This document shows positions 2,156 through 27,300 of a stretch of 64,000 bases of DNA, piece after piece (within the stretch, counting starts at the first letter, position 1; the number at the start of each line of letters is the position of its first letter). The notes under the pieces were generated by a model, which was not told the DNA's origin, did no database searches, and saw only the letters and a list, made by a program, of their open reading frames with translations. The position numbers and the translations under genes were made by a program. The stretch is from Fimbriosthenelais zetlandica. Its lineage: Eukaryota. Location of the stretch: contig OZ365115.1 in assembly GCA_977030845.1 (NCBI GenBank), positions 6,696,001 through 6,760,000 on the forward strand. Reading direction: 5' to 3'.

Positions 2156-5100
2156 TCAGCTTTCTATGAGTCGGACACTGGGATCAAGGAAGGTAAGAAC
2201 CACCGCCGTTATAAAGAGTGCCACGAGAATCATGAAGCCTTCCGGCTGGCCTAGGAAGCTCCGGATAACCTGGAGACTGTGCTGCAAGAGCCCTGGCTTC
2301 CCTTCAGGGGCGGTGTCCTCCTACAGAAGACAAACAATGATAAGTTCAATGTGTGAGATGGAGGGGTTTGCAGGCTCATGGAGGAGGTGGGTGGTGGGCT
2401 TCCATGCTTCTAGTGGGAGGTCACTCAGGCAACTAATAAGTTGAAGGGACATGCAGTCATCCAGTCATTTCTTATGGCTAAATTTTACATTCTTGCAGTT
2501 GGTAAGGTGTGTCACACCAATACAGCAATGCACCAAAACTCATTCCCAACTCCTTTTGGTAAATTATTCAATATAATCAGCACACTACTTGAGAAATCCT
2601 CGCTACAAATACTAGGTCACTTTCTTTGCAGAACCAAGGTAAACGAAGTCACAACTGCATTCTCAATTTTTTAAAACTAACCTTCCATTTAGGAATCTAA
2701 AATGCTCCTATACTAAAAGACCATTAATTTTTTCTATCAAGGCCATCCGATATAACATGAAACTCTTAGCAGTTAGTAAAACAAAGCCTGGAAAATAGCA
2801 CACTATTTGCTGGCAAATAAAATTAGATTGCAAATACAAATGTATATTAATTAGGCATCATACTATTATTAGTTACCCATGCAAACTTTATGAATTAGTA
2901 GGGGTTACAGCGATAAAATTAATACTGAGTGAAGCTTAGTAAATGTTTGAGACTTACACTAATGATCCCTGATTGCTTCAGGTAGTTGACGAACGTGGGT
3001 TCTTCCTTTGTCAGAACAGGCAAGTACTCTCTCTGATACTTCCTCGTCCACCAGTCTTTAGAATGGTACCTGGAAAAGTTAGAAAAGCTGTTGGAACCGA
3101 AACAAGAATTGTCCCTAATAAGGAAACTAAGGAAGGTTCAAACTCGAGTAGAAAAATATCAAAATTTAATTGTTGGAATTATTTACTATCTGAATAGATG
3201 CAGCACTGCAGCAATGATTCCTAATGAAAATCAAAGTAGGCCAGGCAAAACATGACTTATCAGCAACCAAATCATCATAAAAGGCCTAAAGATGCAGATC
3301 AATAAAAAATCTGCTCTATAGGAAGCAGAGAATCAACATTTCTATGACTGATATCAGTGATAGAAATATAAAAATTCTATAACACTACAGTAAAAGCATC
3401 TGCAGAGTTCAGTGGTACAAAAACTTCTTTAAAGCAAAAGTACTTGTCCACTTTCAAATCATTGGTGGAATTCCAATGGAGCCATTGATGGAACTCTTCT
3501 TTGAAACATCGAAATGAAACATCTTTAAACCAACTGACATTTTTCAAATATCCTGCAACAGAAGGAAAGGAAGTACAAACCTTCCTCCAGCAATCCTGGA
3601 TCAAAAATAAAGATGTGAAAAATGAAAAGATATAACACTAAGAACTTTATAGAGATTGGTTTTGATTAACATTTCGTTAGATTAAGATGTGAAATATATT
3701 TCTTACCTAGGGTTGCTTTTACTGGAGGCAGTAAAGTGATAGTGATAGAGAGATGCTCGTATGTATTTCGGTGGTGCTTCAGGGAACGGATTCTCTCCCA
3801 TCAAGTCAAACACTGAAAGAAGAATATGCACTTGTCATTTTATAAACTGCGTTGTTTTAAATTTCAAAGGACGGACATGGAAGAGAGAGACAGAGGGAGG
3901 GGAGATGGAGATAGAAAGGGAGGGTGATAGAATGGGGTACGAAGGGCGACAGGGAGAGACAGAGACTGAGATAGACTGAAATAGAGTTTTTACCTACCTT
4001 CAGGTTGACCATCGAGGATTCGATAACAGAGGTTTAGGAACCACGGATTGTGCTGGTAGCTTCCAAGCGCAGCAAACCACATCTGCCAGTCCAGACGGGG
4101 CTGATGTGGTGCTGAAAAGGGGCAGAAGAGAAGGAAATGGTTTAGAAATATCTATAACTCCAGACATGACTAAAGGATTGTCGAAATTAATCATACCATG
4201 AATACTATTTAAAGAGTATATCAGTATTAATTCTACTAAATTTATATAATTACAGTGAGGCCTTTTCAGTTTATCAGCAATTACTTTGCACTGCTGTACA
4301 AGAAAGTTTTTGATTGTCTTGAAAGAAAATAAGAGAAGCAGCTTGAAGAACTATGAAGCACCTTACCAACAATACTGGGTTTCTCTGTGACATTGCCGGG
4401 TTTGTACATGAAGTTGTACTCCTTCCAGCCTCCATCCAAACTGTTACTTCCCTCAATGATCACTTCAGGTCTGCCCCCGACGCCGGTCATTCTAAAATCA
4501 TCATGTCATGTTATGGTATATTAGAATCAATATATTATATAATTTCGCTTCAAATTTGGAAGCCAGATTGACACTACAAGGTTAATTAATTACGATTAGA
4601 AATATTAGAAAACGGCACTTGGCTTAGATTGGAAATTCAAAAGTATGGTACAATATACTTGGTAGGGAGACATTGAGGCTACAGATATGTATACATGTAC
4701 AGTATGACAAACAAAGGCCCAAATTCAAATTGACCCGTTTCCAACGAGGTTTCACTAATTCAAAAAGCACCTAGATACCAAAAAGGTACTATAATAGCAA
4801 CCCTCTAACCACTCCTGCATTATCTTAGTACAATTACATGTAAGATTAGAATATAAATTTATAAATATTTCAATTAAGATTCACAGAAACCCAGAAAAGT
4901 AACATCAAGACACTTCTGTCAAAACACATAATTAGAATTGTAACAAGATTTTCAACTTTGGTCAGTTAAGAGAGGTTAGGATCTAATGGCTAAAGATGCA
5001 GGTTAAAGGTCTGAATTATACTGCCAGGGTGATTACATAAGACATTTTTATATCCATGATCTTTAATGTGTAGTTCCATTTTACACTCAAGAGAAATATC

Positions 5101-8100
5101 ATCACATATTCTGTGGACATCTGACAAAGAAGGTAATAGATTCCCCAGGATGTTTCTGTACTTCCCCATGAAATACAAAAAGAATTAATGCCAGAGGCAG
5201 TTGTGTATCCTAAGTTTATGGGGACCCATCCCAGGTTTGAATAAAAATGGTTTGAAAAAAATAAGGATAGGGGTTGGGGGGAAACTACCTCACCAAAGCA
5301 AATTCTACAAAAATCGACAATTAAGCTATAATAAAAAAAAAATAGCCTTAATTATTGCTGACTGCAATCACACTGGCAGCATGCTAGACCAAATTGAAAT
5401 TACATGCAAATTCAAAGTCTCTCCCAGTGTCTTTAGCACAAAGATGGAAGACTACCCGCTGTAGACCGGGCTGCTTGCCTTACCTACGGAAAAGCCCGTA
5501 GGAGCCGGTGAGGACTAGTTTGTCCACTTTTCCATGTAAACCGTGAATGCTCGGCCACAAATTACGGTGGGCATTCTCCTCTATAACAGTGTGCTCAACC
5601 TGTGGGAAACAAGATCAATCGGAATCTGGGTCAAGGTTGGATCAACCAAGGTCAAATCCCGATGCAGCTGCTTTAAAAAGTCTTAAAAAAATTGGTCATA
5701 ACACATCGTGTATGAATACACGAGACGTCACATGCTTTATAGTATGGGGTAGGGTGCAAAAAGGCAAAAAGATAGTCCCTTTTTCATAAAGATGAAAAAT
5801 ACCAAAGATTAGACTTCAAAGAGAAAGTAGAGGACTTTCAAAGGTAAAAATTGATTGTATTTGTAGTTGGTAGTGTGTCACGAGGGGGGCAATACCTCAA
5901 GTTCAAACCAGCAGCAACTATTCCTTGGTTAATCAAGTTTTGGAAGAATAAATCTTATTCTGAGGAAATACCATCTTTTTAAAGATTTATACACCAACTT
6001 TCACATATGAGTTGCACCAAGTCAGTTACGTTTCCAAGGAATATTTGCCATGAGAAATTAATTTAATATAATGTAAATAATTTCAACTGTCATTCGACAA
6101 CGTGATATATTCTGATATTCATGTAGGATGATGTAATATGTGATACTGATTGCGAACAAATTTGAATGTGTTACAGATTTAGTATCCAAGTTAGGTCTGA
6201 GCTTGGTCTACCAATGTCTGATCTCTTGTAAATTATGTCATATGATATGAATATCAGAATACATTTATCACAACAAAACAGCGCAAATCACCCAAACTCC
6301 AAAGATGGGGAAAATTTGTGTGAGAGTGAAAGGGAAAAAATTGGAAAAATGAGGGATCAGTCAAAGTATTTTGCTTAGACCAACTGGCTGTGTATACCTC
6401 CTAAAGAGTCCATATGCGCTTGTCAACCGGACTGGTCGTCCGTATGAATGAAGCCGGCGAGCGTAGGATGGAATCATGGAGCTAGCACTTTTGTCTACCT
6501 GAACATGGGGAATCTGCAGGGCAAGGACACATGGTGTCACAGAGTGTGTGCAAATAGAGAAAGATTTTTAATCCTACGGATTATAAAGAGGAATACAGCA
6601 AAAAAGCTTGTCTGGCTTTTTTGACTTAACTTAATAAATATTGATACATGATCTAAAGGAGGGATTCTGAGGTTCTAGAAGAGTAGGTGGGGTTCCTTAT
6701 GAAACTAATATTTAATAGTAAAAATGCTAGCAAATGTGAGATTGACATCCAATCGTTCTGTTACATTCGAATATAAGGATGTTTTTATTACCACAGTTTG
6801 CTTTCTCTTGTGTGGGAATTTTGATGAATTTTATTTCAAAATATCAAATGAAAACTTGAGGGATTAGCTTACTTCTGAGGGTCTTAAGAAGCCTAATAAC
6901 AGGGCTTAAGTTAATATAAATTTCGGATCCATCCCCAGCATCAGATATTCAGGAGAGATGACTCTCTCAGTGAAGCTAATGTGTTAGCGTCATTTATTAA
7001 GTATGCAATATAAGTCTTTGGTTAAAGTGTGAGAACTGTCTGCGCAGCAAAGTGTATGTATCCGGCCAGCAACCTAGAGGAAGTTTGAGCTCAATTCCAC
7101 ATTAATCTCTACAAATTTCTCTGCCTGCATCTTACAGATTCTATAGATATGAAGTAGAACCTCATCTTAAGTAAAAATGATCGAAGTTAAGTTCTCTTCA
7201 GTTTATTAGAATAACAGAGCTCATTCCTCCTTTGAGGGTTGGTGAAACGTGAAAAAAGCTCAAGTAACACACCAGAAACACAGAAAGGTAGTGCGTGATA
7301 GAACTTTATGAGCAAAGGGAGATATCAGTAGCTGGGAGAAATTCCAGGGTTAAAACTACTTCCATAAGCTCAAGTGATTATAAAAAATGTTAAAAAGGAA
7401 GTCTCATTTGGGGATATTTCTTTCGGAAGAACCAGAAGGTAAAGGGGCTATGTGTTTGAAAGAATGATAATTTTTGAACGATGAGAAAAAAAATCATGGG
7501 CAATAGGGGACTACACTGACCAATGTAAGAGAGAGTTCATACATTGCAAATCAATAGATATGAGACGTTTAGCTTGATATTAATTTCTTACGTAATATAA
7601 ATATAGATGCAGTTCAGTGCAATGGCTAGACGTATACAATCATGCTATTGTCTTATCCATCAATATTTTACGGAAATTAAGTTTTCATTCAAGAGATAAG
7701 AAGCTAATGCCATTTCCATAACAAGTCATACTGCTTATTTGAGAGAAGTAGAGTGGGGAGGCATGTCTATGTATACATTCATGGAACGAAGCCATTTTTT
7801 AATATAAAATGAAAGGAAATGAAAACTTACCAGACTGATGGAGAACATGGCCACTGCAATCGCTCCGAACACCAGCGTGCCAGACGTACCTGTCACTTTT
7901 TTGACCATTCCACGCTCCTTAACCAGGGCTCTGAAACAATACCTCTGGTTAGAAATTCATCCGAATTACAAAATGACTTCAAACTTAACATGAAAACATA
8001 ATAATATTATGGACTTACTTAAGGAGCGACCTAACCATTTCCCACCCGAGTGACAAAGCTCCCATCCATATTGTAATGGGTACAGACAGCTGCAGGAACC

Positions 8101-11100
8101 TGTTGAATTCTTCTGGAGTAAAGGCTGAAAAATTAACAATTAATTCTTAAATCAATCCTAAAATCCCAACTTCACCAGAACAAGCCTAACATCCAATTGT
8201 GTTTGTTTAGATTTTGGTTAAATTTTACCATTAATTCGAAACAGAGATTGGGGAAAAAATTATTTAAGCATAGCTATTTTTCTCACCAACTTTACTCTCT
8301 ATTCTGAATGGGTTGAGGGCCACACGCATGGTGAAGTAGCGGATGGCCAGGTAGGCCAGGCCACCATACACCACGAGGTGAAGGCCGAGTCTTATAAACC
8401 GCCAGAACGGTCCAATCACCGGCAGCTTCTCCGCCTCATCCTCACTTGCTGAAAAAGTAGACACCATTTCCATCATTATCATATCATCACCCAATGCTGG
8501 ATGTATGCTGTTAATAGTGGCCAATGGTTGATAATTGATATGCCGCGAATGTAATATTAATAATATTCTTGGCAACTATCATAATTATTTTTACTTCAAG
8601 TTCTATATATAATTATATTGATTATAGCTCAATAATTTGTCAGAACTAGCAGCATACATTTAAAAAATCATTAAAATCGTTAAGAAAATGAAGGATTAAG
8701 GACCATGAAGCCTCACGTTTTTGTCGTTTTCCCATACAGCTACGGAGGAAGTTATCATCGAGCAGGCTTATACAAAGAGTGACAGTCAGAAGGTTAAAGT
8801 AGTTGTAGTTTCCAGTCAAAATAATCAGCACCTGTAGCAGCAACTGTAAAGACACAAATTGTAGATTTGTAAAAAATATCTTGACTTTACATTCTAATCA
8901 ATCTTAAAACACTGCCTGATTTTCATCCAGTGATCACACGACCAATTATAATATTCCAAATACTCAGGGATCTGTCTATGGCATATGTCGTGTCTCATTA
9001 TGAAGGCCACTTGTCAAATTGAGAAACTTTTATTATGTTTAGGAAATTCTCCAAAATGTTTCAGACTAAAGGAGTACAAATGTACTTTAAGATCGGATGT
9101 AAATATAACCTAGGTTAGAACTCTATAGCTCTAGTATTTATGCTGGATTAAGGCCTTAGACTGACCATTAATGGGTGGGGTGTACTCAGAGATCAAATCG
9201 TAGTTACACAGAACCTGCACTGACCACACCACAGGTCAGTCAGTGGTCAAACTATGAGGGAATGACCAGACCATTCCTCCTTTACCTGTATGGAACTCCC
9301 CAATAATGGATTTGATTTTCAAAACATTGTACCCCAGTGATGTCAATTTATCATGGATTTTCATGTGCCTGCACATCATGGAATAGATAATAATGTGGAA
9401 CTAACGATTGAACAATATTTTCTTTTTTTAAATATTGCGGGCAAGTATATTCTGAAGGAATCTTAAGAGGTGAAGAAAGGCCAACACCCATTGAACTAAA
9501 TCAACTTATAATAAAAACGTTTGATTGATCACTTTGTCAGACTACTCAACCATAAAAGATCAAAGTTCGCATGTTGGATCCTCGCTTAACACCTCAACAC
9601 AAAAGCACTGTCAGAGACGGGGAATTAATCAACGCTAACGTGGATAACAAACGCTAATGACAAACAAGGAACAAACATGAACTTGTACCTCGTCTGTTTG
9701 AGTTGCTACAGACTCAAGTACTTTGGTATCTAAGATCCAAAGAAATGTTACATAAATGTGCTCCTAATTATACCAATAGTAGGTTCTTATTAACAATCTG
9801 TTTCTGGCACTAAATTGATGGTTAGATTTTAGCCATAGCTGGAAAAGAACCTGAGCCATTAGGACTGGACACCTTTCTGTGTCCAAATACATTGGAATAC
9901 CTAAGTTCAGTATACGTTTTTTTAAAGTTAGGCCAGAATTGGATGAGAAACTTAAACAATATGTAAGTACAAATATAATTTTCTCTTTAAATATTTTAGG
10001 TATCGACACTTAGCAATGGGGCAGGCTTGATTAATGTCCTAATACTTGATAGGAATCGCTAAAAATGAAAACATTAAAAAGATTCCATCCATGCCAGTGG
10101 AATAAAGGTGATGTCTTAGTCTAAATCCCAATTTTTGGCTAAGGTCGGCTACTAAAGCCCTCTAGCTTAACTTAAACCTGAAGGAGATGTAGATGGGGGA
10201 ATCTCAAGCCATGAAGGCACTTAGCAGGCATAGTAAGGGTAACTGGTCAAGGGTTAGGGGTTATATGAGGCTAAAATGAAGTATTAAATTACTTAATAAG
10301 GCACTCCTGACATCTGACATGTGCCAAAGAATTATTGACAAAACTTTCGCAAGGTGTGAAGGCAAGGGAAAGGTGTGAGATGTATCATTTCATACTGAGT
10401 GATGCTCGGAGGTGATAGAGTACTCGTCACCAGAAGCTTTCATACAGGACTAGCATAGAGGTGTCAAGGATGCCAAGGTATGTCAAGGAGAAACAGGTGT
10501 GAAAGCATTAGTGCAAATCAAGGATATATATCCCAAGCTATGGTAAAGTAGTAATCAGTTACAACAAATACAACCATGGCGCGGGTAAGACAATTTTCGA
10601 TATTGGCATAGGCCATCAATTATTAATTATATCTTAACAATTTTTTTCAAAAGGCCTTCCGAAATGGGAAGTGACTGTGAAAATTATTATTTTTAATTAT
10701 ATTATAGATTATAACTTCTAAGATTAATTTAAGTTTTACCCTGGTATTCATTGATACGTCTAAATAGTTTCTCCCACCCATTCATATATCCATGAATCAA
10801 TTATTTATATTATATAGTACGACAGTAAGACAATTGTTCATGCATAATTTTGTCCACTCATAGTATAATTCCATGAAAACATTTTTTCAATTTGAAATAC
10901 ATTTTGAAGAAAAGTCTTCCAGTATATTGCCACAAGCAAGGACATGTCACTTGAAGATTATGTTCCACTATGTTTCAGTTTGTATAGAGCAGCCTGTTAT
11001 TGATAAATACCTATTGTTACACTATAAATTGGCCACTCTATGAGTGGTCTCAAGTACAGAGCTGTTCTTAGCAACATGCCTTTACACACGCCACACAGCA

Positions 11101-14100
11101 CACACTATTATCATAAAGTTATACCCACGGCTCGGTAATAGACTTAGCGCTCAAACAGAGGATAAGCCTTAATCCTTGTAACTTAGAGTCATTTTACTCT
11201 AAGTTGTAACTTATATGGCTTAGAGGAATATCTACATTACATACTGGGTCTTATATTCAAGGGAGGAAAGGTAAGGTACATTCCAATCTTGACACACAAA
11301 TCGGCGTCTGAAATTGTTTCATACATATAAGATCAATATTTAAAATTGCTCGGTATTACTGATTTGTCATTAATGGAGTGCTCATCTGCTTGGTGGAACC
11401 AGGACTTCGCTAGACATTTTTGTCTATTATAAATGTGCCAGGTCTGACCTGGAAGGGTTTCACTGTTTGAATGCCTCTATGTCTGTAGGTCTTGGCTAAG
11501 GTTATCTGCACACACACAGAGGGGAGGGATGGACCACCTGTGAACTTTAAGCAGAGCAGCTCCCTCTCAGCAGCCCACCCTTAAACCCTTCTGTTTGCCT
11601 ACACCATGGCAACCGGTCGCTATGGGAACAGACTTGGCTAGTGCCCAGTCATAAGTTATATCCTTGAGTTAGTGCAACAGTTGACTTTCACTGTCAGTTC
11701 TAGACTTATTGATATGGATATTATATACATTCTATGATATATACCACGCCCTATCTCACCCAATAGAGACAGGTCAACCAGGGTCCGATTGAATTATTGA
11801 CCTGCTGAAGGCAATTGGTTCAACCCGAAAATTTCAAAAAGTCCATTGATTTAAATGGAAAATATGGCTGGACTGCTGACCACAGGTCAAATGAAATGAA
11901 TAGTCTTCTCACAAACCCCATTTAAAATTCAAAATCCTGAAAAATGTCCTCTTGGATGATATTTTGGGGACAGGTTCTTGCAAGTCTTATTTTGGTGTAG
12001 CTCCAAGGTTGGGAGGGATAGGATGTGTTTACTGTGGGCCCTGCAGCAAAAAGGTATACACCGACCTGACTTGATTCTTTTTAGTCTTTTATCCAAGATG
12101 GTTTACTCCCTGATACTATTACTGACTGCATCTCCAGTGAACATATTTGAAAATTTCCTCAGCCTTTCCTTGATCGAGGAATATAAATGTCTAATATCAT
12201 TCACATTCTTGCCCCTCTCCACCAGCCTGAATACATGTTGGTGCTGCATACAGAAAGATATATATTTAGAGTATCTTAGGGCAATGTTTTTGCCTCAAAA
12301 TGCACCAAGGGAACGAAGGCCCTCAGTGATATAATGCAAGATAGCCTAAGAGTAACCAAACAATGTATGTAAGGAATGGTAAGATAGTTTACCATCATAA
12401 TCTCTACATACCGAGTACTCACATTTAGAGCGGGAGTTCACCTATACTTTACGGTGAGAAGTATTGGTAGACTGGCCTTGAGATATAAACATTGAATCGG
12501 CCTGACTCTCAGACCTCTCCTGAGAGCCGATATCTCAGGAATGTTTAACATTCACTGACAAGATCTCAAAGGAAAAATACCTTCAGACAAGAGAAATAAA
12601 TTTTCAATTTCTCCATTCATTTGGCTAAAGGCTGCCGTCTCAAAGCAGAGGTTAGATTTTCTGATGATAGCTTGATCGCAAAAACATGTTGCAAATATAA
12701 GAATATATAACAACAAACGAAGAGATCAGAACTAGTAAATGCTACTTTTCAATGCATCTTCAATTCATTCCCTGCAAAGCCCAGCATATTTTGATTATCT
12801 GTGAGATAAAGGCTGTTTCTTCTACCATATTTATTACATAAACAGAAGGTAATCTCACTATACGTGGGTGAGAGGACATGGCAAAATAATCTGGGTCCAT
12901 AGGACAAATATTAGAGAGGCAGAAAACAAGTGAGGCTAGCATGTAAAGAGTGGGATGTTATCAGAAATAACTAGCATCAAATGTAGCACAGAACATTACT
13001 CCTGATACTAAAGATGGCCACGATGGCCGAGGGGTAGAATACATGAGAAATGATGGATAGAAGTGGAACTGAGGTCATGCTCCATGAGGTGCCAGAGAAG
13101 AAAGTTCATAGAAAAATTATTTGTTCGACACTCAGTGTATAGGAACATAGCGTCTACTACTTTGCTGAATTCGGACAGAAATTCTCAAATTTAACCACAT
13201 TTAACTCAATTCTGAACGTTCCACTTCTGGTTAGAGGTACTATCTCATATTTCAAATGACACATATAATTATGGAGACTATTTAGGAACGTGAATAAATA
13301 ATTATAATGCCCAATTCTATCTTTCACATATAAAGGAGAAACCGAACAAATGTTTGGCTTAGTCTGAATGGGGGAGGTTTTTTTAATCTGGGTGTTATTA
13401 TTTAATACCTATTAATAAGGTTCAACCACCAGCTACACGGACTTAATACTTCTATAGGGAGTGACCAATACTTGCCAGGTAACTAAGCAGGGTCGTATTA
13501 AGAGTTTATAAAGGCCTTCTGTACAATATACAACAAAATAAAATCTAGTTCATTCCCAATTCCTGTAGTGGATCCTCCAGCTTTGAAACTCTACTGGATT
13601 TACCCACTAACAATGGATATTTTTGGAAGAAATTACACAAGAAAAGATTGACAGTATATATAGTGATCAATGAGAAATTTCCCGATTGGAGATAGTTGGA
13701 GAATGGAAGTTAACAGTGAATATGTAGTGGTGTACTACAAAGGCTTGTGAAAGACAAGTTGTTTTAGCTCACTCATCACACACACTAACAAGCCTATACC
13801 TCACCCAGGAGAAACTTAAACCCTGGAATCACTGTGCTTAGTTGTTGTTTTTTTGAAATGACAAAATTCATTACCAAACTCTGGATTACATCCCTATATC
13901 CATCAGAAACTGACATTTAAATTTCGTACTAGAAAGACCATGTCTTCTGAGAATAAAAATTGAAAGAATGATATAAAGATACGGAGTGAGAATTGTGATT
14001 GAACAACAGTGGATCTAGTCTATATTCTAAGGGCAAAATGGAGGAACATAGTATACAGAGTGAAACAGAGGTGCAGGAGACTGGAGGAGATAAGGTAAAC

Positions 14101-17100
14101 ATCATAGATTTTTTTGATTGTGAAGGGTATGCAGCTCATCAACATCCCAACTGTTCCTTCCAACCAAATAAATGCAAACTAGATATATGCGTTAATCCTT
14201 CATTGAGACAGCAAATATTCATTTTGTGTGTGTGTGTGTCAACAGTCGATATTAAAACATCCCTGACAAGCCTTCTTAACCATTCCCATTTTGCAGATTT
14301 TAAAACATTTTTGCTTCCAATTTTCTGCTTTTTTGAGCTCATCATTGTTTCGGCATAGCAGAACTAGTTAGCATATATTTACCATGATATTTCACCTTGG
14401 GTGTGTACTTGTGAAGTTATAACACTATTGGGCAGGTTGAGTGAGAGTGTTGGCCATCTGAGTGAGTCTTGAATCAGGAAGTGTCAGTGTGGTACATTAT
14501 ATGAGTACAGGTAGGTAGACTGGTGGGAGTACGTGCCCTATCATCTCACACTACATTCAACCATCCATCATCAGATGTCATTAAAACTTAGCTTGGTGTA
14601 ATTTCACTGATTTTATCTAACCCAAAATAGCTTGAAATCATATCTTTTCAATATCAATTTACAGAATGTGGACTTCAACATTCTGATATGATTCTGGGTT
14701 AGAGCAGAGAAGTTATTTCTTCTATAGCCAGGCCTTTTTCTACTCATATGGTCCTACTCGTCCAATGAATCAAGATTTCAAATGTACTGGTAAATAAAGT
14801 GATCGAAAAAAGTGATCGAATTAAAAATATGTTGACCCTTGCTAACTAAAACAAGTATGGTGATAACATTGATGAGTATATCTAACGTAGATAGAGAGAA
14901 ATGTCTGTGATGGGAGTCTGTGAAAAAAAGTACATTCAAAGAAAAGGTACCCAGAACTGGTAGGACCAGCTGTGTGTCCCAGTAGCCTACCACTGAATCG
15001 ACCTCAATTTCCATTAATAACTTCCTTTTCCAGGCCCTTTGATAACAAGGCGAGTATTGTCAGGTTTTTAAGCATGAAGAGTATGGAGTAGAACCTATTT
15101 ATATCATACACCAGAGCCCCACCTGGTGTCTGGGTGTCAAGTCAGCATAATGAGGGATTCAACCCTAGCGACAGTTACCTGACAACCTGCCCTGCCCTTC
15201 ACTGAAGGTCCTGACACACTAAACCGATCACTGGACTAAGGACCTTAACACACATAGCAGACGATCTTACTTAACATATTAAATAGATGATCTGACATAC
15301 GTATTAAACAAATGTTCAGACAAGGTTAAGTTTGGTATCAGGTTATAGCCAATGGTCGCTCCCTGATAGGCCACGTTAGGAATTTACGGAAAATTTCTAT
15401 TTGAAGAAGGATATTAATAGACAGTACGAGATTTGGGACGCACGGTATATTTATAAAGGATAGATAGACCAGTGTAAGTTATGGATTTAAAAAAGCCAAA
15501 CCATTACAGACCACTGAGTATACCTACTAGAGACCTCATCATAAGAGATGGGAAGAAAAGATTAAAAAATCTATACACAAAGGCAGTATAAACAGCTGGG
15601 GACGGAAGATGAGACGAGAGTCTGAATGGAGAAAAGAAGCAGGAATAAAAGGTTAAGGATTAGGAGGAGTGGGAAGGAAAGATGATGGATTGGTAGGAGG
15701 TACACTAGTCCAGGGTACAATGAGAGTGGGTAACGTCCACACCAGAGCAATAAGATGGAAAATCATGTTGAGCAGACCAGTGGAATTTCTAGAAACTTCC
15801 TGCTCTTTTCATAAATTCATCATTAAAAAATCTTTCAGAATGGCTTCACTTTTCCCATTATAATGCCATTAATGGTCTAGATTTTGAAAAGGGACAGGTT
15901 TCCCCACTCACAGTTACGACTGCTCTCTCCCCTAAAAACATGTTTCGTGCAAATAAACAACAAAATACCTTGCACTGGGGATAGTTAAAGTAGAAAATAG
16001 ACTGCTTAGTACACATTTCAGAGGTGATTGTTTAACATTAGGAACGTCTGGTATCGAGAAGAATTTTGGTTTGTTGCTCATCAGTGAACAAATCTTTCAG
16101 ACCACTTCTGTACCCTTTGCTAATGGCTGAGGAAGGTCAAACAAATAATACTGTGGAAATAAGGCCTTAACACTGAAGAACGGTGCATCTACTTTTGTTT
16201 GGAGGATCCATTTGAATAGTAGGCCTATTAAGTAAGGGCAAAAGCATTAATCACTGAGGTCATTTGTCTGTGCCTCAGTCTTAATCTTTTGGGTTGTTAC
16301 TTTTTGTACACTATACATGTGTAGTATCCGAGGTTTGCAGATTGCAAAACGTTTTGGTATCGAGTAAACTTTGTGAATAATAATTTTGATGAAAGACCCC
16401 AATGCCCAAAATCTACACTTCTCCTGAGTGAAAGTAAGTAGAGATTCTCAGGAATACCTGGGACCTCACAAAAAGACCCTGCATGTATACTTTTTACTAT
16501 TATCATGCAGTAAGTGTAATTTACGTTAGTGGTGTGGTCTGGTTCCTGTTCGTTCCCCAGTATCATGTAAGGAGATGTCAGTTTGTAGGGTTATGTGTTT
16601 AATGTCACCTGTAAACTGTTTATGTAATCATCTGTAAGAGAAAGGCCACTAGTATACTTGGGTATCACTCTCCAAGGAGCTGCTCAACTGTACCCAGCCA
16701 CCTGTGGATGAGAGGGGAGAGAGTGGAGGGAGTAGCTACAGAGAGTAGGTGGAGAAAACTAGGCCAGAAAAGGTGGGAATACAACAAGCAGGTCTAGCAT
16801 TCACAAAGCTTGCCCTAAATTCAAACTGAGGGGACAGGTTTATCATTTACCTGCGTTGGATGCCCTACATGTTTATCTGTCTACAGAAAAAGAAAATTCC
16901 CTGGTTGACTATTGATCATCTCCAAATCTAAATAGGTAATTTGGGAATAAATTATTTTTGGGAAAAATCCTTTTCACATTGATTTCTTTTGCAGGGACTC
17001 CTACCCATCATGTCAACAAGGGCCAACTCTGGGGCTTCCCATGGGGGAAGTGTGAAGAGTGGCAAGTCCGCAACATCAAGTCGATCCAAGTCAAGTAAAT

Positions 17101-20100
17101 CTGTGAAGATGTCGCGGACAGTGAGTGCCGCTGGCTCTTCTGCTCAGTCAGAAGCAAGTGCCATCAGTGGTAAAAAGGCCGGCTCAACCAGTGAGGAGGT
17201 GGACGAGAATGGCTTTGTTCATATTGATATGAACAATCAGGGCCTTACTGCTATTGCCAACAACGTATTTGACCGTAAGTATCACAAAGACTTCCTCTTT
17301 CCCTTGTTTTTATTGTTAACCCAATGTAGTTCTGGTAACATAAATCAGTACGTGCAAGAAAACACAATCAAAATGCTCTAGCAGGCCTGAGTCAACAAGG
17401 AGTTACAGAAATGTCTTTTCTTTATAGGTCAGAAGGTCATGACACTGGATCTGGGATGTAACAACCTACGTACAATCCCTCCATCCATCTCCAAACTACA
17501 AACCCTGAGCCGGCTTTGTGTGTCCAAGAACAGCATCCGCTGTAGCAATGCCAACGACTACTCGGGGCTGCCCACAGAGCTGGCCAGTCTCATACACCTA
17601 GAGGATCTGGATGTGTCTGAATGTAACTTCCCACATGTACCACCAGCCATCTGGAGAATCCCCAACCTCAAGTATCTCAACATCAGCCGTAATAAGATCA
17701 ACATGCTGGTGCCTGAAGTTGGCAACCTCATGAAGCTGACAAACCTCAATGCCCAGTCCACCAATATTTCCACTCTGCCACCTGAAATAGCTTTCTGTCA
17801 AGATTTAGAGGTGCTGCTGCTTTTTGGTAATGTGATTGATAGCTTACCAGAAACCCTCAAGGAGCTGCCAGTACTTCACACACTGGCCATCAACTACCAG
17901 AGCTTCTGCTCTATCTTTGACGCCTATGACATGGATGATCTATTAATGAAAGGACAGATTCCATCTGAGCATATCCCGCAGGTGCTCTTTGACATACCCA
18001 GTTTGAGGGCGCTAAACTTTGAGGAAACGAAAATCAACACATTGCCCGAGAAATGTACAGCTCAACTTGAGGAGTTCTATCTACAGCGCAATTTCCTCGC
18101 CAGAGTTCCTACAATGGTCGCTGACATACTGACCTTGAAAGTCATTGACATCTCTGACAACTTCCTGACTAGTCTTCCTGATGAGCTGGGGCAGTTGAGA
18201 TCACTGGAGACTTTCAGGGCAGATAATAACAAGATTGAGAGCATACCTGTGAGTCTAGGCCACATGGTGTCATTAGAACATTTGTCTCTTGGTGGAAACA
18301 AAATAGAGGTGATCCCACATCAGATAGGACACCTTCTCAAATTGAAATCTTTAGTTCTGGACAGGAACAAGATCATGGATATCCCTGAGACTATAGTTAA
18401 GCTTAAGGAACTCTCCACTTTGGATCTGACATCAAATCAGATAACAGCTTTGCCTATTTGTTTCTATAAGATGACCTCATTACTGAGGGCCCATACCTAT
18501 GACAAGCTGAGCAAAACAGGACTCTGGCTGCATCTCAACCCCATCAAAATCCCCCCGGAGGAAATATGGAAAACAGAAGACCCCAAGAAGATCTTCAAGT
18601 ACCTTAAGAAGCTTGAGATCAAGAGAACTGAGCATCTACAGAGGCAGAAGCTGGTTATTCTGGGCGAGGCTGGCTGTGGGAAGACATCCCTGCTCAACAC
18701 AATGATGACAGGAAAGTCGTTTCTCACAAGTGGACAAGAAGCGAGAACTCAGATGGTGGAACATACAAACTGGACAACAGAAAATGATGTCCCATTCATG
18801 GTCCTGGATATGGGAGGCTCCAATGTCTATCAAAGTGTCTACCCGGTCTTCTTGAACCCTACCAGTTTATACTTTTTGGTATACGACCATCGGAGGTACA
18901 CAAGTCAAAACCACTACAGTGCCATAGGTTACTGGTTGAACCTCCTACAGCTCTATTCACCAGGGGCAATTGTCAAAATCATAGGTACTCAAACTGATAA
19001 TATCAGTGACGCAATTAGTGCTCCAGCGCTTGAGATGATCACAAATGAAATAGACAAGCAGTTGGCTGACAATGACAAGAACCTCCAAACTGAGATAGAA
19101 AAGCTAGAGGAGATCCTGAGTAAGGAAAACATTGAGAAACACTCAGTGAAATATCACCATATGAAATTACAGAAACGCAGGATGGAAAAACTGAGGAAGA
19201 TGCCACTAAGAATTCACGGTGATATAGCTTTGGTTAGTTCAGGTGATGGTATTCCAGGAATCTTACAATTGGTAGAGGAGTTAGAATACTTGGCAGTGGA
19301 CAAAAAGCTTAGACCACAGGGTCAGAGGTTCATCCCAGATAACTGGAAGGGCTTCCGTACCAGTCTGAAGCTGGTGAATGATCATTTTATAGAATGGAAG
19401 CAGATGGAGGCAATGGCCAAGAAACATGGCATCAAGGGCAGTGTTTTAGCAGAGTGTATAGATTTCCTGGTTGACTCAGGAGATATCTTATGGTTCAAGA
19501 ACATCCCAGATTTACAAAGAGTAATATTCCAGAATCCACGCAAGCTGGTTGAGATATTGAGTGCTTTACTCAGGAATGATCTTGATACGTTCCTGAGGTA
19601 CCCAGATAATCTTGTTTTCACCAGTAAAGGCCAATTCACAACAGAGAGCTTCATAGAAGCAAAGGAGGCATTAAGAAAATGGGGTCAGATCTCCAGACCC
19701 ATGCTTCAATGTCTCTGGTTCTATCTCAGACTTGATTATGATGACTTTAATTACCTCTGTGATCTCATACCTCGGTTGGATCTTTGTTATTGCATACCTC
19801 AACCAGAGATTCCCTTCAAACAACATGTATTCTATCCACTACTCACTGTGCCTTGGTATGTCACTGACCAGGCGCCTGATGACAAGGACCTACCAATATG
19901 GGATAAGAGCCTACCAAACAACCACATGGAACTGAAAGTGGAATTTATCTTCCCGACACAGTACCCTCAGGGTCTGTTTGAAAGGCTGTCGTGTAGAATA
20001 CACAATTTAGTATCAAATCGCATTGACTGGCAAGATATGATAGTGGCTGTAGTTGAGCAGGGACATGAAGATGAAACAAAAGTCTTGCTACACAGATTCT

Positions 20101-23100
20101 TAGATACCAAGGATTACACACCAGTGATGAGTGTCAAAGCTCGCAGCATGAATCTGATTGCAGCCTCAGATGTAATGAAGGAAATCTGCGGCAATGTTTG
20201 TTATCTTTTACGAGACTATCCTGGCATGATTTGGTATTTCAACTTCACAAAAGTCAATTGCAAAGAAGCATCAGTTGAAAACTGCTTTCCCGAAGGGGCT
20301 TTGCCTTAGCCTTGCCAGCAGCATGATGCGTAATATTATTTTAATTTATGTAGATACAGAAATTAGTTATCTCCTTTGATATGAAATACTAGCATATGTT
20401 GTAACTACTAAAAATTTGTACAGGTGAAGCTGAATAAAGGAATAATAATGGATGACTGCGCACAGCCTGGTCTATTTAATGAGTCTGAATACCATCCCTC
20501 TTCACAGGTGTACACCATTACGTGTATTGTCCCTGCACACATGTTAGTACACTTGGCAAGCAATGATAAACATAACCATTCAGTGTTTTGTAAAGGACTG
20601 TTTGGCTTGGTCGGTGTCAACCCACTGAAGTTAAATGATAGCCTGGTATTTTAGGGAAAAATGTCTTGTTAAAAGTATATATATAATATTATAGTTTATA
20701 GTATGTCCTATATTATGGTATGTCTGTTATGGTCTGCAAATTTGCATAAAATGTCAAAAACATATTTTCACGATAAAGAATGAGTCTCTCTAGCAGTCAC
20801 CAATGTTGCCTTGGAGACTTACCTTCGTCCGACTACAAATATTTTTCTGAATAGTTTGAACATTAACATCCCTGAAATTCTGGAACACACAGATTTCTCA
20901 CTAAATAACTTAAGGTGTCTTACCTGACAGCCGAACGCAAAGAGCCTTTGCGAGCGTACAGGTGAGAAGAAGAGCATAGGAACCACTATCTCAATGAGGA
21001 AGACAGACGCAACGCTTAGCTTCTGGAACCACTCAGGTAATTGGTGGAAATACCAAGACATCGGCGTGGGAATACACTGGAAACATTAGACAATGACTCT
21101 ATTGTAATATCTATTTGATCTTTAAAGATTATGTTAACAACTTACATACATGTAATTATCTTAAACATATTTATTTATTAAAATGAAGATGTTAAAAATT
21201 ATACATGAATATAATATACAAATTATACATGAAAATATTATATTTAAATGAAATATAAACGTACCTGAGTCTCATAATGGTAATTGAGAGCTGTCAGTCC
21301 CCACCATGTGGGACAGTTGCTGGTCAGTTTGACCACTCCTGAGGCGAACATGAGCCTGAAGAGTAGCCACTTGAGTAGCCACATGGTGATGCCGTCGTGG
21401 ATGTGGTGGGAGACGCCGCGCCAACGGAATAAGTTGAGAGGCGCGACTAGGATAGTCAGGAATCCTGTCTCCAGAAGCAAAATGTCCCTACACAATCAAG
21501 AGATAAAGAATAGTGCTATCATCACCTTATAAAATATTATCAATGTGTACTATATCACTGGCTCAGAAAAAAGGTAGTACTTGAAATCATTTAACCTTGA
21601 GAAGTAAAGATAATGCATATACATGTATAAGAAACAAAGACTGATGCTTACCATTGGAACCAGAGAAACGTCTGTCCCACCTAAAATAAAAATAAGATAT
21701 GTAGTATACATTTATGATAGATCATCAATTGAAAAAATTATATGATTTGAGACAAGTCATGCATCTTAGAGATCTGTAAAATGATAAAAGGTAAACGACC
21801 TACCTGGAATAGGGATAGGTAAAAAGCCCAGAGCAATCCAAAAACCAGTGAGTTTCGGAGACCTCTGGTAATCATAGCAGCGAAAGCGAGGATTACCCCG
21901 CCCAGACAGAGAAAGTCCATGCCCGTCACCGTGTCCAGACCCAAGCGGGGCAACAACCGCAACAAAGTGGGCTGGTTAAAGAGCAGGTCACTGAGCGACT
22001 CAGCTTCTGGAGCAAAGAATGAAACCAGGATGAATGAAAACCAAGTCTTCATTTATAATGTAATAATAATAACAGAAAAATTGATATTCTTTCTTGCAAT
22101 ATAGAACCTAGAGATATTATCTATATAATTGGGTTCCATGGAAAATAAATATTTATCTCCAAACCCAGAGGTTAAAAGATATTTTCACAGATTAAAAGTT
22201 GTTTCAAAAGGTTAGTTTTAATTTAGCAAGCAATAAGGAATGAACTTCCCTAAATACAGATTGAGAGGTGGTTACAGGTAGGCTTACCTTTTTGGACGAC
22301 GAGTTTGGCTGGTAGGATGCCATTATCACCGTAAAGTCCTATCAAATTAAAAAAAAAAATTAGAAATCTATCTTTTATGGAAGCAGACGATTCCATCAGC
22401 TGATCGAAATTTGGCTTGCTTCCCAATACACAATTGGAAGCCTGCCAGCATTAGGTTTGTAGCAAGTTATGAAAGGGCATCTAACCTAAGCCAGATTTGT
22501 CAGACAGAATGTCAACTTCCAGTCTGGAGTAAGGAGCCGACGTCTAATTTATGTTTACCGGTACCCGTATACATGTAATTACTATCCTTCAAGAAGTTTT
22601 TCACATGACTGAATACACACAGACACAGTAGCCTCTTGGACTTGACATGTCTTGCAGCAATTTACTACTTTATTATTTTTTCTGAACAAAATTTGCCTCC
22701 CATAGTCATAGGGTCATCTTTCTAATTTACTGGATAGGCCTATAGACGCTTAATTTACCCACAGACTAACCTGGTTTACCTTACAAATCACACTTTAAAA
22801 AATTGTATGTGGTTGATGAAGCCTTTTGGTTTTGCTATTAAATTATGTGTGGCATTGTTATTACAGAATATAGCCTATGTATAGGCTACCGGTACCTAGC
22901 CAGTGTAGCCTGCAGGGAATAAATCAGGCCTATATTAGGCCTAGTCTCAGACCAACGTTATTATAACTAAAGTAATTACTATGTTTGTTCATTTATTGAA
23001 ATCTGACAAAGAATATCATGGCCAGATAGGGTCATGTCCACGACCTGACCATGGGCAGTCCGGGGGAGGCGGGGCAGGTTGTCGGGCATTGACCCCAACA

Positions 23101-23474
23101 CAGTCGGTAGGACCTGTAGGCTGAACACACTGGTACAAGGACGGGAAACCACAGCAAAACAATGAGCCTCTTCCTTGGAAGAGATTGTGTTGCACCGACA
23201 TCCGCCAAGCAAGTGATGTACAGAATTAGCCCTGCACAGGCTATATAAAACATAGCGGAGGGGTCGAGGGAGAAGGAGGAGTTGATGGAACTCAAGAGGG
23301 ATGCTGAGAACAGCTGTAGATGGGGGATGGGGAGGGCAGGAAATCAGCGGGTAGGAGGAGCAAGGAGGCACCCAACCTACCTGGGATCTGCACGAATAAA
23401 GAGCTGAATGCAAAGAGGTAGATGACGGACATGCACCAAAGGAAGAAATCTCGGGTCATCCGTATTTCTCCCAT
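2156..23474 (-). CDS. LMF2: Lipase maturation factor 2 (ER multi-pass membrane protein), 16 coding exons, ~661 aa
   Basis: Phase-consistent GT-AG exons: 23474-23381, 22338-22288, 22006-21804, 21680-21652, 21487-21265, 21076-20924, 8843-8717, 8448-8287, 8124-8019, 7930-7831, 6513-6398, 4491-4367, 4111-3998, 3812-3707, 3069-2958, 2320-2156 (1986 nt, 662 codons). LMF-family motifs: [96 protein letters not shown]. The N-terminus [20 protein letters not shown] is LMF2-type. Confidence 0.95.
11600..11629. promoter_or_regulatory. Tandem RFX X-box-like motifs
   Basis: TACACCATGGCAAC (11600-11613) and GTCGCTATGGGAAC (11616-11629), 2 bp apart. Both resemble the X-box GTTGCCATGGCAAC and lie in a GC-richer patch of LMF2 intron 6. 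Confidence 0.5.
14038..14094 (+). CDS. Candidate upstream coding exon of the nested Roco gene ([19 protein letters not shown])
   Basis: ATG at 14038 with a 57-nt open frame ending AAG|GTAAAC (phase 0). This is in frame with the acceptor TTTTGCAG|GGA at 16995 that leads into MSTRANSG. Confidence 0.4.
14225..14238. repeat. (TG)7 microsatellite
   Basis: Direct reading. Confidence 0.9.
17010..20309 (+). CDS. MFHAS1: LRR-Roc-COR Roco protein, MFHAS1-like (no kinase domain), ~1048 aa, nested antisense in LMF2 intron 6
   Basis: Exons 17010-17274 (GAC C|GTAAGT) and 17428-20309 (TATAG|GT), phase 1/1. Ser/Lys-rich N-terminus, then a long array of LxxLxLxxNxL repeats. Roc domain: P-loop [14 protein letters not shown] and GTQTD, with a charged helical insert as in MFHAS1. 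COR-like segments [25 protein letters not shown] and [19 protein letters not shown] ~120 nt after the stop. The symbol denotes family resemblance; orthology is untested. Confidence 0.88.
20805..20818. promoter_or_regulatory. X-box-like motif downstream of the Roco gene
   Basis: GTTGCCTTGGAGAC; its reverse complement GTCTCCAAGGCAAC is one mismatch from GTCTCCATGGCAAC. Confidence 0.45.
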
Positions 23475-24394: not shown

Positions 24395-27300
24395 ATGGCG
24401 GCGGGGGATATTGACACACGTTTTAGTCATCTGCTAAAACCGATTCGAGATCTTACCAAGAATTGGGATGTGGACATTGCTGCTGAATTAGAGGAATACC
24501 TTGAAGAGGTGAGTATTTTCTATAATTTTCTCTTATTTATTTACTTGCTTTCCAAATGTCATGTAAAAATGATTAACCTTAGATACATTTTTAATAGAAA
24601 GGTTTTTTCTTCACAAAAATTATGGCAGCTCAGCAGGGCTCCACTCAAAGCTATAATATTATATTATTAATTATGTAAATAAATAATATGCATATTATAC
24701 TGTCACAGAGGTGCGATATCCTATAGGCTACAGCCAGTATAACCAGCCCTATAGCCGAGGTAGCCTATATTATAATGTGTGTATTCGGAACCCACCACCA
24801 GCTACGCGGTTTCGAGGCACAGGACTAGTCTTAGCTTTTACACAGTGACACTCAACAGAAGTGTGCGTGGGGTGGGGGTTAGGTACTTGGAAGAGACACC
24901 GGGGTAGGGGTACTCGTACCATCCTTTAGGCAGTGTGTGTCTATAGAAGGGGAGGGGGGAAGGTTGGTGTTGTGAGGGGGGGGGGGGGGGGGGGGATACA
25001 CGGAAGAGTCACTAGGGGGAGGGTGAGAGCCTACTCGTAGAAAATCAGGGAAGCGTGTAGCAAACTCCAGGGGAAAGCTAAGGGTCGGTGGGTGGGGGGT
25101 GTTAATTAATTGGCTGTTGATTGGTTCGAGGCACAGGACACTCACAGGCCTTAGCTTTCACACTTACTGCAGAGGCTCTGCCGTTCGCCGATTGGATAGT
25201 GTTGGTGGGGGAAGGTTTAGTGTGAAGAGGACTCAGGTACCAGGGTAGTGAGAGTACCTATTAGTAGGTTGGGCGGGTGTGGAGGGGGGCTGGGTTAGTT
25301 GGGGTTGTTACTGATCGTAGCTAGTGCTGGGTTCGAGGTATAGGACAGGCCTTAGCTTTCACACAAGCAGCAGAGGCTTTGCTGTTACTATTGGAGAGGA
25401 AGTGGTGGTGGTGTGTGGTGTAGAAGTGTGTGTGTGTGGGGGGGGGGGGGGGGTAGTTTGGTAGGAAGCTACAAGCCAACCATTCCACACGGGCCTCTCA
25501 ACCCTACCCACACTGTCCCCTCTATCCCTAACACCCCCTCCTCTCCACTGCCCAATGGTCAACTACAATCACTGGTGCAGGGTTAAATCATTAAATCTCA
25601 GGGGTCAATAACTAGGAACGATCATTAACAGAATAGGTCTACAAGTGGCCAATAATCCACCGGCCAAAACACAGCAAAATTACCCCCCATCCCACCCAAT
25701 GCTTCTTTCCTTTCCATATAGCTTATGGGGAGCCATAATTGGCCTTGCTAAGCCTATACTGATATATTGTCTTCATTTTTTCACTTCAGATAGAGAGTAT
25801 CACCATTACTTTTGACAATGGGATGACCTCCATGAACTTTGCTGAAGCTGCTCTCCTAATCCAAGGTTCAGCATGTGTCTACAGCAAAAAGGTAACTTTA
25901 TAACATTAGCTGTTTTCCAGTTTAATGTTACTTCCCTTTGTGAATTTTAACATGCCAGTACGCTTTAGCTTTTCGGGTATCTATCATACCGGTATTTATT
26001 TATTTTTTTCTTATAGGTTGAATACCTCTATTCTATGGTTTATGAAGTACTCCAAACATTACAAAGTAAAAAGTAAGTAATTTTCATGGTCTATTTCATT
26101 GCCGTAAATGTGTATTGTATGTCTATTTGATTCTCTCAGTTTTGTCTGTATTTTGTGTGGTATTTAAACAAATAAATATGATCATTCTAGGAAACAAGTA
26201 CAAGGTTCTATTGGTCAGGATGGGCAGGATAATGATGAGCCAGCAGGAGGAGATACAGAAGAGGATGTAAGTTTCCGGTATTCTACTAGTTAATAAACAG
26301 TCCTCCTCTTATTTAGGCTATAGGCAATACTTACTAGATATAGGATAACATGTATTTATTTTTACTGATTCAATTAACCTTTAAGTTTTTCTTTCATTTT
26401 TCAGTTTCTATCGCTGGACGACATCAAGGAACATGGCAACATTGATATGAAAAATGATGACGAAAACAACATGAGTGTAAGTTTACATCGCTTCTAATAT
26501 AACTATATTCTGAAACATTTTAAATTTATTTTTATGAAATATTCAATTTATTATTAGTTTAATTGTATGTGGGGAAAATGTTTGCGCTGTCCACCGCGTG
26601 ATTATGTATTTTAGTATTCATTCAAAATCTCTTGTAGTTGGTAAAAACTATTCCCCGGACGCCAATGGCATTGATTAAAATGGACGATGCAGCGAAAGGG
26701 GAAAATCCACTATTAAGGTAAAGGTGTAATGTACTATTTTAGAGAATAATTTACTTTCTGTCTATTCTTTCTTTAAAATCTAAAGTATTCAAAGATATAA
26801 TAGACAATATTATATTGAATAATTTCATGAGGCATTTTCTCCATAGAATCTGATATGTGACAGGCTTATGAATTAGTTACAAAGTTTTAATGTTTGAAAA
26901 TAAAATAAATTGTACCATCCCTCTTTCCCATGTAGCCATACGGGAGAAGTGTTGGGGAATCGGTTTGACTTCAGAGTGAACACAAGTACCACTCACCGTA
27001 GCGGGATGTTGTTACTGGACCTGGCCCACCTCTCTCTACTGGAGAACTCCTTCCTGAACAAACCCAGCTCTACACCATTCCATCCTCCACACCGTCAGTT
27101 TGCTCTCCTTAATATTCACACCACCATTAGCCTGCAATCAAATATTTTCATTCATTATTTATTAAATAAGAAATAAAAGATCCTCTAGTCATCCCTTGAT
27201 CATACAAATACGTGTATCAAGAAATTGATGAGCATGGTTTAACCTACTTGCAAGAAATTAAAAAAAAAAATTTGAGTTTTCATAAATGTATGGTTAAATT

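Follow-up and report, generated by a model that had tools for sequence, protein, structure and literature searches.

An antisense MFHAS1-like Roco gene within intron 6 of LMF2: a probably old nest shared by several spiralian phyla

The DNA analyzed here, a 64,000-nucleotide (nt) stretch of contig OZ365115.1 of Fimbriosthenelais zetlandica (hereafter the window), contains one complete gene inside an intron of another. The host gene, LMF2, was rebuilt on the minus strand as 16 exons with an open frame of 661 amino acids (aa) that extends from an ATG at 23474 to a stop codon ending at 2156. The nested gene encodes a Roco protein and is located on the opposite, plus strand at 17010-20309, within LMF2 intron 6 (8844..20923, minus strand). 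This intron is in phase 0, has canonical GT/AG borders, is flanked by exons that are open in frame and is 12,080 nt long, versus 88-2231 nt for the other 14 introns of the gene. Both frames are intact and the Roco gene is contained wholly within the one intron, with its stop codon 614 nt from LMF2 exon 6. The first-pass annotation of the locus had described an outsized LMF2 intron of 12,080 bp that holds a nearly single-exon, kinase-less, MFHAS1-like Roco gene with a 2.9-kb exon and a stop codon ~600 nt from exon 6. These features were all recovered, as were its coordinates for exon 6 (21076-20924), exon 7 (8843-8717), the intron and the Roco gene, and its naming of the two genes was borne out by Pfam, fold ranking and the alignment of LMF2. 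We consider it likely that the two genes are a true host/nested pair of great age, in which LMF2 intron 6 houses an antisense, single-copy MFHAS1 orthologue.

The LMF2 model was guided by the LMF2 proteins of other animals, using tblastn and a junction solver. For the critical junction between exons 6 and 7 (20924/8843, phase 0) there was a clear best solution that was unique and used canonical splice sites: exon 6 (20924..21076) ends in the donor cag/GTAAGA and exon 7 (8717..8843) is preceded by TTTACAG. Consistent with this junction, the Pfam LMF1 domain (PF06762) is unbroken across the 12-kb gap, with domain positions 6-78 at 21262-21486 (exon 5, 21265..21487), positions 77-130 at 20918-21079 (exon 6) and positions 126-162 at 8742-8852 (exon 7). 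A six-frame search placed LMF1_C (PF25179) further downstream on the same strand (3712-4493), collinear with LMF1, and the same search across the whole genome identified two LMF1 loci and two LMF1_C loci. The 661-aa product aligned end to end with the LMF2 proteins of other animals at 50-64% identity, and the proteins that aligned in this way carry both LMF1 and LMF1_C. In a tree whose rows included no named LMF1 protein, the window gene was placed inside a starred, 23-row spiralian clade, to which every spiralian row named as LMF2 also belonged; the genome's other LMF locus (contig C10) fell far outside that clade.

The nested gene has two coding exons, the spliced product of which is a protein of 1048 aa with leucine-rich repeats (LRRs) followed by Roc and COR domains. 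Coding exon 1 (17010..17274, plus strand) begins with the ATG at 17010, encodes a serine-rich N-terminus and the first LRR, and has a GTAAGT donor at its end. It is separated by a phase-1 intron of 153 nt (17275..17427), positioned after the first LRR, from coding exon 2 (17428..20309; 2,882 nt), which encodes LRRs, Roc, COR-A and COR-B and finishes with the stop codon TAG (20307-20309). The ATG is preceded at a distance of 15 nt by an AG acceptor (about 16994-5), which points to the possible existence of at least one untranslated 5' exon further upstream. Beyond the stop codon, the only AATAAA before LMF2 exon 6 is a candidate poly(A) signal at 20433..20438 (plus strand); the Roco transcript would end there, at 124 nt after the stop codon and about 460 nt short of exon 6.

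The Pfam families identified in the Roco protein were LRR (LRR_8 and LRR_14), Roc/Ras-type (Roc, 50.1 bits with a cut-off of 27) and COR (COR-A, 36.0 bits, just above its cut-off of 35.3); no kinase was among them, and the frame ends after COR. When the PDB was searched by sequence, the Roc-COR part matched the Roc domain of LRRK2 with expect values (E) down to 7e-10, and the whole protein retrieved mostly LRR proteins. Modeling of the C-terminal 565 aa with AlphaFold, on the basis of 26 orthologues, gave a predicted local distance difference test score (pLDDT) of 88.6 and a predicted template modeling score (pTM) of 0.87. Comparison of this model with PDB structures produced alignments of ~550-590 columns with the Roc-COR regions of LRRK2, LRRK1 and the Chlorobium tepidum Roco protein (E 3e-18 to 1e-14), an extent from which we conclude that COR-B is present in addition to COR-A. 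In a Foldseek comparison with Swiss-Prot models, the top three matches were the MFHAS1 proteins of Xenopus, human and mouse (E 4e-38 to 1.5e-35, template modeling scores 0.80-0.82), followed by mouse LRRK2 (E 1e-20, score 0.56), with LRRK1 and DAPK1 ranked lower (DAPK1 at E 3e-15 for mouse and 1e-13 for human). The closest named ESM Atlas clusters were also MFHA1/MFHAS1. The nucleotide-binding motifs G1 (GxxxxGKT), G3 (DxGG) and G4 (TQxD; GTQTD here) are present and are conserved wherever an orthologue row of the 26-row alignment extends over them.

Vertebrate MFHAS1 (MASL1) resembles the nested gene in having the LRR-Roc-COR architecture without a kinase and in having its coding region mostly in one exon. 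The two are also similar in length (1048 aa for the nested protein versus 997-1052 aa) and in the start of Roc (approximately residue 495 of 1048, or ~405 of the exon-2 frame, versus ~387-403 in the vertebrate proteins). However, their identity over Roc-COR is just 20-23%, and human MFHAS1 lies outside LMF2. Based on these comparisons, we assign the nested gene with moderate confidence as a predicted MFHAS1 orthologue, that is, a kinase-less group 1 Roco protein (LRR-Roc-COR only). Human MFHAS1 binds guanosine triphosphate (GTP) and hydrolyzes it at a very low rate (reviewed in PMC6337361). By analogy, the nested protein would most likely act as a GTP-binding switch like other Roco proteins, with the LRRs as an arm that would engage partners. 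The links of mammalian MFHAS1 to innate immunity are not transferable to the spiralian gene. The gene is single copy in this genome, in which the next best match to the Roco protein is only 23% identical. At least 56 other COR-A matches were found in six-frame translations of the genome, mostly in open frames of ~390-500 aa, with many clustered on C11 at ~0.78-2.84 Mb and others on C19, C13 and C39. These short COR-containing genes have expanded greatly in this lineage and are, at the level of sequence, unrelated to the nested gene.

In order to compare the host intron between species, annotated LMF2 proteins were mapped exactly onto the DNA. In all species mapped the intron was homologous, being located between ...FSFYAQ and (V/I)xLQVxII, and its position is common to the cnidarian, arthropod and hemichordate genes. 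The comparison of LMF2 intron 6 in other genomes, a check that the first-pass annotation had proposed, revealed an antisense Roco gene in the homologous intron of the annelid Owenia fusiformis (L020; intron of 20.9 kb), the nemertean Tubulanus polymorphus (L009; 8.5 kb) and the gastropod mollusc Littorina saxatilis (L010; 24.8 kb), as in the spiralian genome studied here (12.1 kb). The corresponding intron had no Roco match by tblastn in the hemichordate Ptychodera flava (L018; 2.1 kb), the spider Parasteatoda tepidariorum (L019; 2.5 kb) or the coral Porites harrisoni (L021; 0.67 kb). Among the species with the nest, the distance from the Roco stop codon to LMF2 exon 6 varies from ~0.3 to 5.3 kb. 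The host intron of Owenia has a second antisense gene (L020:23068-24597), which encodes 509 aa with no Pfam family, and no counterpart of it was found in the window. In Ptychodera, another LMF2 intron, expanded to 28 kb, holds an antisense gene of 961 aa with a faint match to DUF6589 (L018:16467-44738); this is an independent nest, unrelated to that of Roco.

Further evidence came from additional spiralian genomes and from the Roco proteins. In a relative (L001), whose Roco protein is 62% identical to that of the window, LMF2 exons 6 to 1 lie directly 3' of the Roco gene in convergent orientation. In Lingula, Mizuhopecten, Lymnaea and Ylistrum the Roco and LMF2 proteins are recorded on contigs of equal size, which suggests that the two genes may be linked in these species as well. 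In the annelid Dimorphilus, which has a miniaturised genome, the Roco gene is away from LMF2 with other neighbors, and the nesting has been lost. The best homologues of the Roco protein are spiralian proteins named 'MFHAS1 homolog' by NCBI, with 34-62% identity over nearly the full length. These genes (from Tubulanus, Littorina, Lingula, bivalves and gastropods) belong to one clade, the internal groups of which follow the species groups, and they have the same LMF2 host intron where this was checked. The Roco tree recovered the molluscs (gastropods with bivalves), Lingula with bryozoans, and a separate clade that includes the window gene, and the nested members are spread across the tree. The position of the phase-1 Roco intron is common to the window, Tubulanus and Littorina, although the Littorina gene has extra introns relative to that of the window.

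The remaining LMF2 exons, all on the minus strand, were placed as follows. Exon 1 (23381..23474) has at 23474 its only in-frame ATG, and homologues map to it collinearly; exon 2 (22288..22338) was placed by the junction solver and tblastn; and exon 3 (21804..22006) has 84% aa identity to the relative L001. Exon 4 (21652..21680) is a microexon of 29 nt with AG/GT borders that encodes VGQTFLWFQ(W), a motif kept in all five of the LMF2 proteins that were compared (P0132 and those of Tubulanus, Owenia, Ptychodera and Parasteatoda). Downstream of the nest, tblastn and the junction solver located exons 8 (8287..8448), 9 (8019..8124), 10 (7831..7930), 11 (5484..5599) and 15 (2958..3069). LMF1_C starts in exon 12 (4367..4491) and continues in exons 13 (3998..4111) and 14 (3707..3812), and exon 16 (2156..2320), which includes the stop codon, was assigned from the model and the end-to-end protein alignment. 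Within the intron that precedes the exon 11 of the model, a second look-alike of this exon was detected at 6391-6513 (minus strand), which matches the corresponding residues of two LMF2 proteins at 31-39% identity and may represent an exon duplication or an alternative, mutually exclusive exon. Supporting the identification of LMF2 is its synteny with NCAPH2, the first CNDH2_N match of which is at 24419..24514 (plus strand), head-to-head with LMF2, as is also the case in Owenia and Ptychodera. In Tubulanus, NCAPH2 is beside LMF2 but on the same strand (L009:21327-26684), and we therefore attribute that arrangement to a local inversion in Tubulanus.

Apart from the Roco gene, little was identified in intron 6. 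Its five open reading frames of 78-119 aa had no Pfam match, no Rfam family was found, and there were just two trivial tandem repeats. The DNA of the intron is unique in the genome except for one dispersed repeat of ~65 nt at about 10618-10705, which has at least 18 other genomic copies of 81-90% identity; the 8.2 kb that precede the Roco ATG yielded no other repeated DNA. Comparison of the intron of the window with that of L001 by blastn and tblastx revealed no non-coding conservation. The ratio of observed to expected CpG was mostly 0.14-0.35 over the Roco gene and most of the intron (9001-20000), with a few 500-nt bins at 0.43-0.60, whereas it reached 0.68 next to exon 7 and 0.52-0.74 at the end of the intron near exons 5-6. 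The low values would fit methylation, in the germline, of the body of a transcribed gene.

That an annelid, a ribbon worm and a snail all carry this pair of genes in the homologous intron indicates that the nest is an old inheritance and not a recent insertion. From these sequences, it appears to be at least as old as the last ancestor shared by annelids, nemerteans and molluscs, which lived more than about 500 million years ago according to fossil dating. In the history that we favor, the Roco gene would have entered the LMF2 intron once, in or before that ancestor, and the nest would then have persisted mainly by mechanical lock-in, as separation would need two breakpoints in one intron that spare both genes. 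The need for two such gene-sparing breakpoints would also account for the rarity of nest dissolution, which was seen only in Dimorphilus. Each of the two genes is probably transcribed independently of the other. The first-pass annotation had predicted that their expression would be mutually exclusive or tissue-restricted; mutually exclusive expression is not a safe inference given that opposite-strand nested pairs in C. elegans and mammals are reported to be frequently co-expressed, with effects on host isoforms (PMC12274878, PMC11694760).

Several points weigh against this interpretation. The transcription of both genes and the splice between exons 6 and 7 are predicted from the sequence, and neither the 5' untranslated exon or exons of the Roco gene nor its promoter was located. 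A search of the 9.3 kb fetched upstream in L001 did not reveal LMF2 exon 7, such that the nest in this relative is seen from one side only. The assignment of MFHAS1 orthology depends on fold ranking, domain architecture and the NCBI naming, since the rows of the Roco tree are spiralian and bacterial only and do not include vertebrate MFHAS1. A homologue search restricted to the Roc-COR region returned eight proteins, none of them vertebrate, and the full-length search was filled by spiralian and LRR-driven matches. One genome was used per outgroup phylum, and a spiralian origin is consequently thinly sampled. Finally, that the lock-in was passive is something that we infer as probable, and selection on the arrangement is compatible with the same observations.

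Selection is the main rival explanation. It proposes that the nest was kept because convergent transcription or the nested promoter modulates LMF2, or because the intron contains shared regulatory elements. Possible routes would include a divergent promoter at the Roco 5' end that drives a short LMF2 isoform of exons 7-16, for which the intron-initiated short isoform of the host gene reported at ceh-10/polq-1 in C. elegans serves as a model (PMC12274878), or premature termination of LMF2 after exon 6. Such a regulatory link is conceivable because studies of nested pairs have reported co-expression and effects on host isoforms (PMC12274878, PMC11694760), including altered host transcript diversity with co-expression of mammalian pairs (PMC11694760), and a nest that has kept its intron and its orientation in three or more phyla would fit with it. 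Conversely, no non-coding sequence conserved between the window and L001 was found in the intron, the host intron ranges in length from 8.5 kb to 24.8 kb, exon 6 lies at a similarly variable distance from the Roco stop codon, and in Dimorphilus the Roco gene is found away from LMF2. Given that no conserved non-coding sequence, no other recognizable gene or RNA and almost no repeats were found in the intron, together with its variable length and spacing, a shared regulatory block is not supported, yet it retains some probability. On balance we judge maintenance by selection to be fairly unlikely. The more specific proposal that the nest is a rare genomic change that occurred once at the base of Spiralia (Lophotrochozoa) and has been maintained because Roco transcription or its promoter shapes LMF2 output is, in our estimation, quite doubtful. 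If it were true, a GTPase signaling gene would have been coupled to a gene for lipase maturation in the endoplasmic reticulum for more than 500 million years.

A different question is whether the nest is older than Spiralia, having been present in the bilaterian ancestor or earlier and then lost separately in deuterostomes, ecdysozoans and cnidarians. The position of the host intron is common to cnidarians and bilaterians, and the occurrence of MFHAS1-type proteins in vertebrates implies that a gene of this type predates Spiralia; the examination of a single genome per outgroup phylum also leaves room for an older nest. Nevertheless, this history requires at least three independent losses rather than one gain, and in Porites, Parasteatoda and Ptychodera the homologous intron is a short one of 0.67-2.5 kb in which Roco has no match. 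Human LMF2 is on chromosome 22. Human MFHAS1 is on a different chromosome, at 8p23.1 (PMC6337361). Taken together, these points make an older nest unlikely.

The first-pass annotation had offered two origins for the nest, of which old nesting was upheld by the shared arrangement in Owenia, Tubulanus and Littorina, and a recent insertion confined to the lineage, in which retroposition or duplication would have brought a Roco gene into a large intron of LMF2, was not. In favor of the latter, the coding region is nearly a single 2.9-kb exon and the genome contains a large expansion of other COR-containing genes. However, it is refuted by the conservation of the nest across phyla, and we consider it highly improbable, given also that the orthologue tree follows the species groupings. 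A retrogene (processed copy) was likewise rejected because the phase-1 intron of the Roco gene recurs in other phyla, in the Tubulanus and Littorina orthologues, and no parent gene or close paralogue is present in the genome (next best match 23% identical). An artefact, in which separate LMF fragments were mistaken for one gene or a misassembly placed Roco between the halves of LMF2, was raised by the first-pass annotation and is conceivable in that the arrangement was judged from assembled sequence and not from reads, but it is barely credible because there is no N in the window and the two halves complete one continuous Pfam domain and one 661-aa frame, and, in addition, LMF1 and LMF1_C each occur at exactly two genomic loci and the same layout is found in four independent assemblies of other species (L001, Tubulanus, Littorina and Owenia).

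The preferred interpretation, an old nest retained mainly by lock-in, has several implications. The LMF2/MFHAS1 nest constitutes a clean, rare genomic change for use in spiralian phylogeny and in anchoring synteny, and it provides a natural test of persistence by inertia versus regulatory coupling. In addition, the MFHAS1-type Roco gene is a conserved, single-copy spiralian gene and, as such, offers a tractable invertebrate context for a human protein that is poorly understood.

Both genes were already known, nesting is a frequent arrangement and the data do not demonstrate a new mechanism; the host/nested pair is of an ordinary kind and of unusual age. Nested genes are mostly young or lineage-specific. 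Approximately one-sixth of human genes host a nested gene (PMC11694760). In the literature searched, neither the nesting of MFHAS1 in LMF2 nor its conservation across phyla was found, and the only two papers there that name both genes are unrelated as judged from their titles and abstracts. The closest parallels are the LRRTM genes in the introns of alpha-catenin genes (PMC3933685) and ceh-10 in polq-1 (PMC12274878), in which, as for LMF2 and Roco, a complete antisense, protein-coding gene has been retained for a long time inside a long intron of a host to which it is unrelated. The LRRTM/catenin nests are reported from most jawed vertebrates (PMC3933685), and the LMF2/Roco nest is shared by several spiralian phyla.

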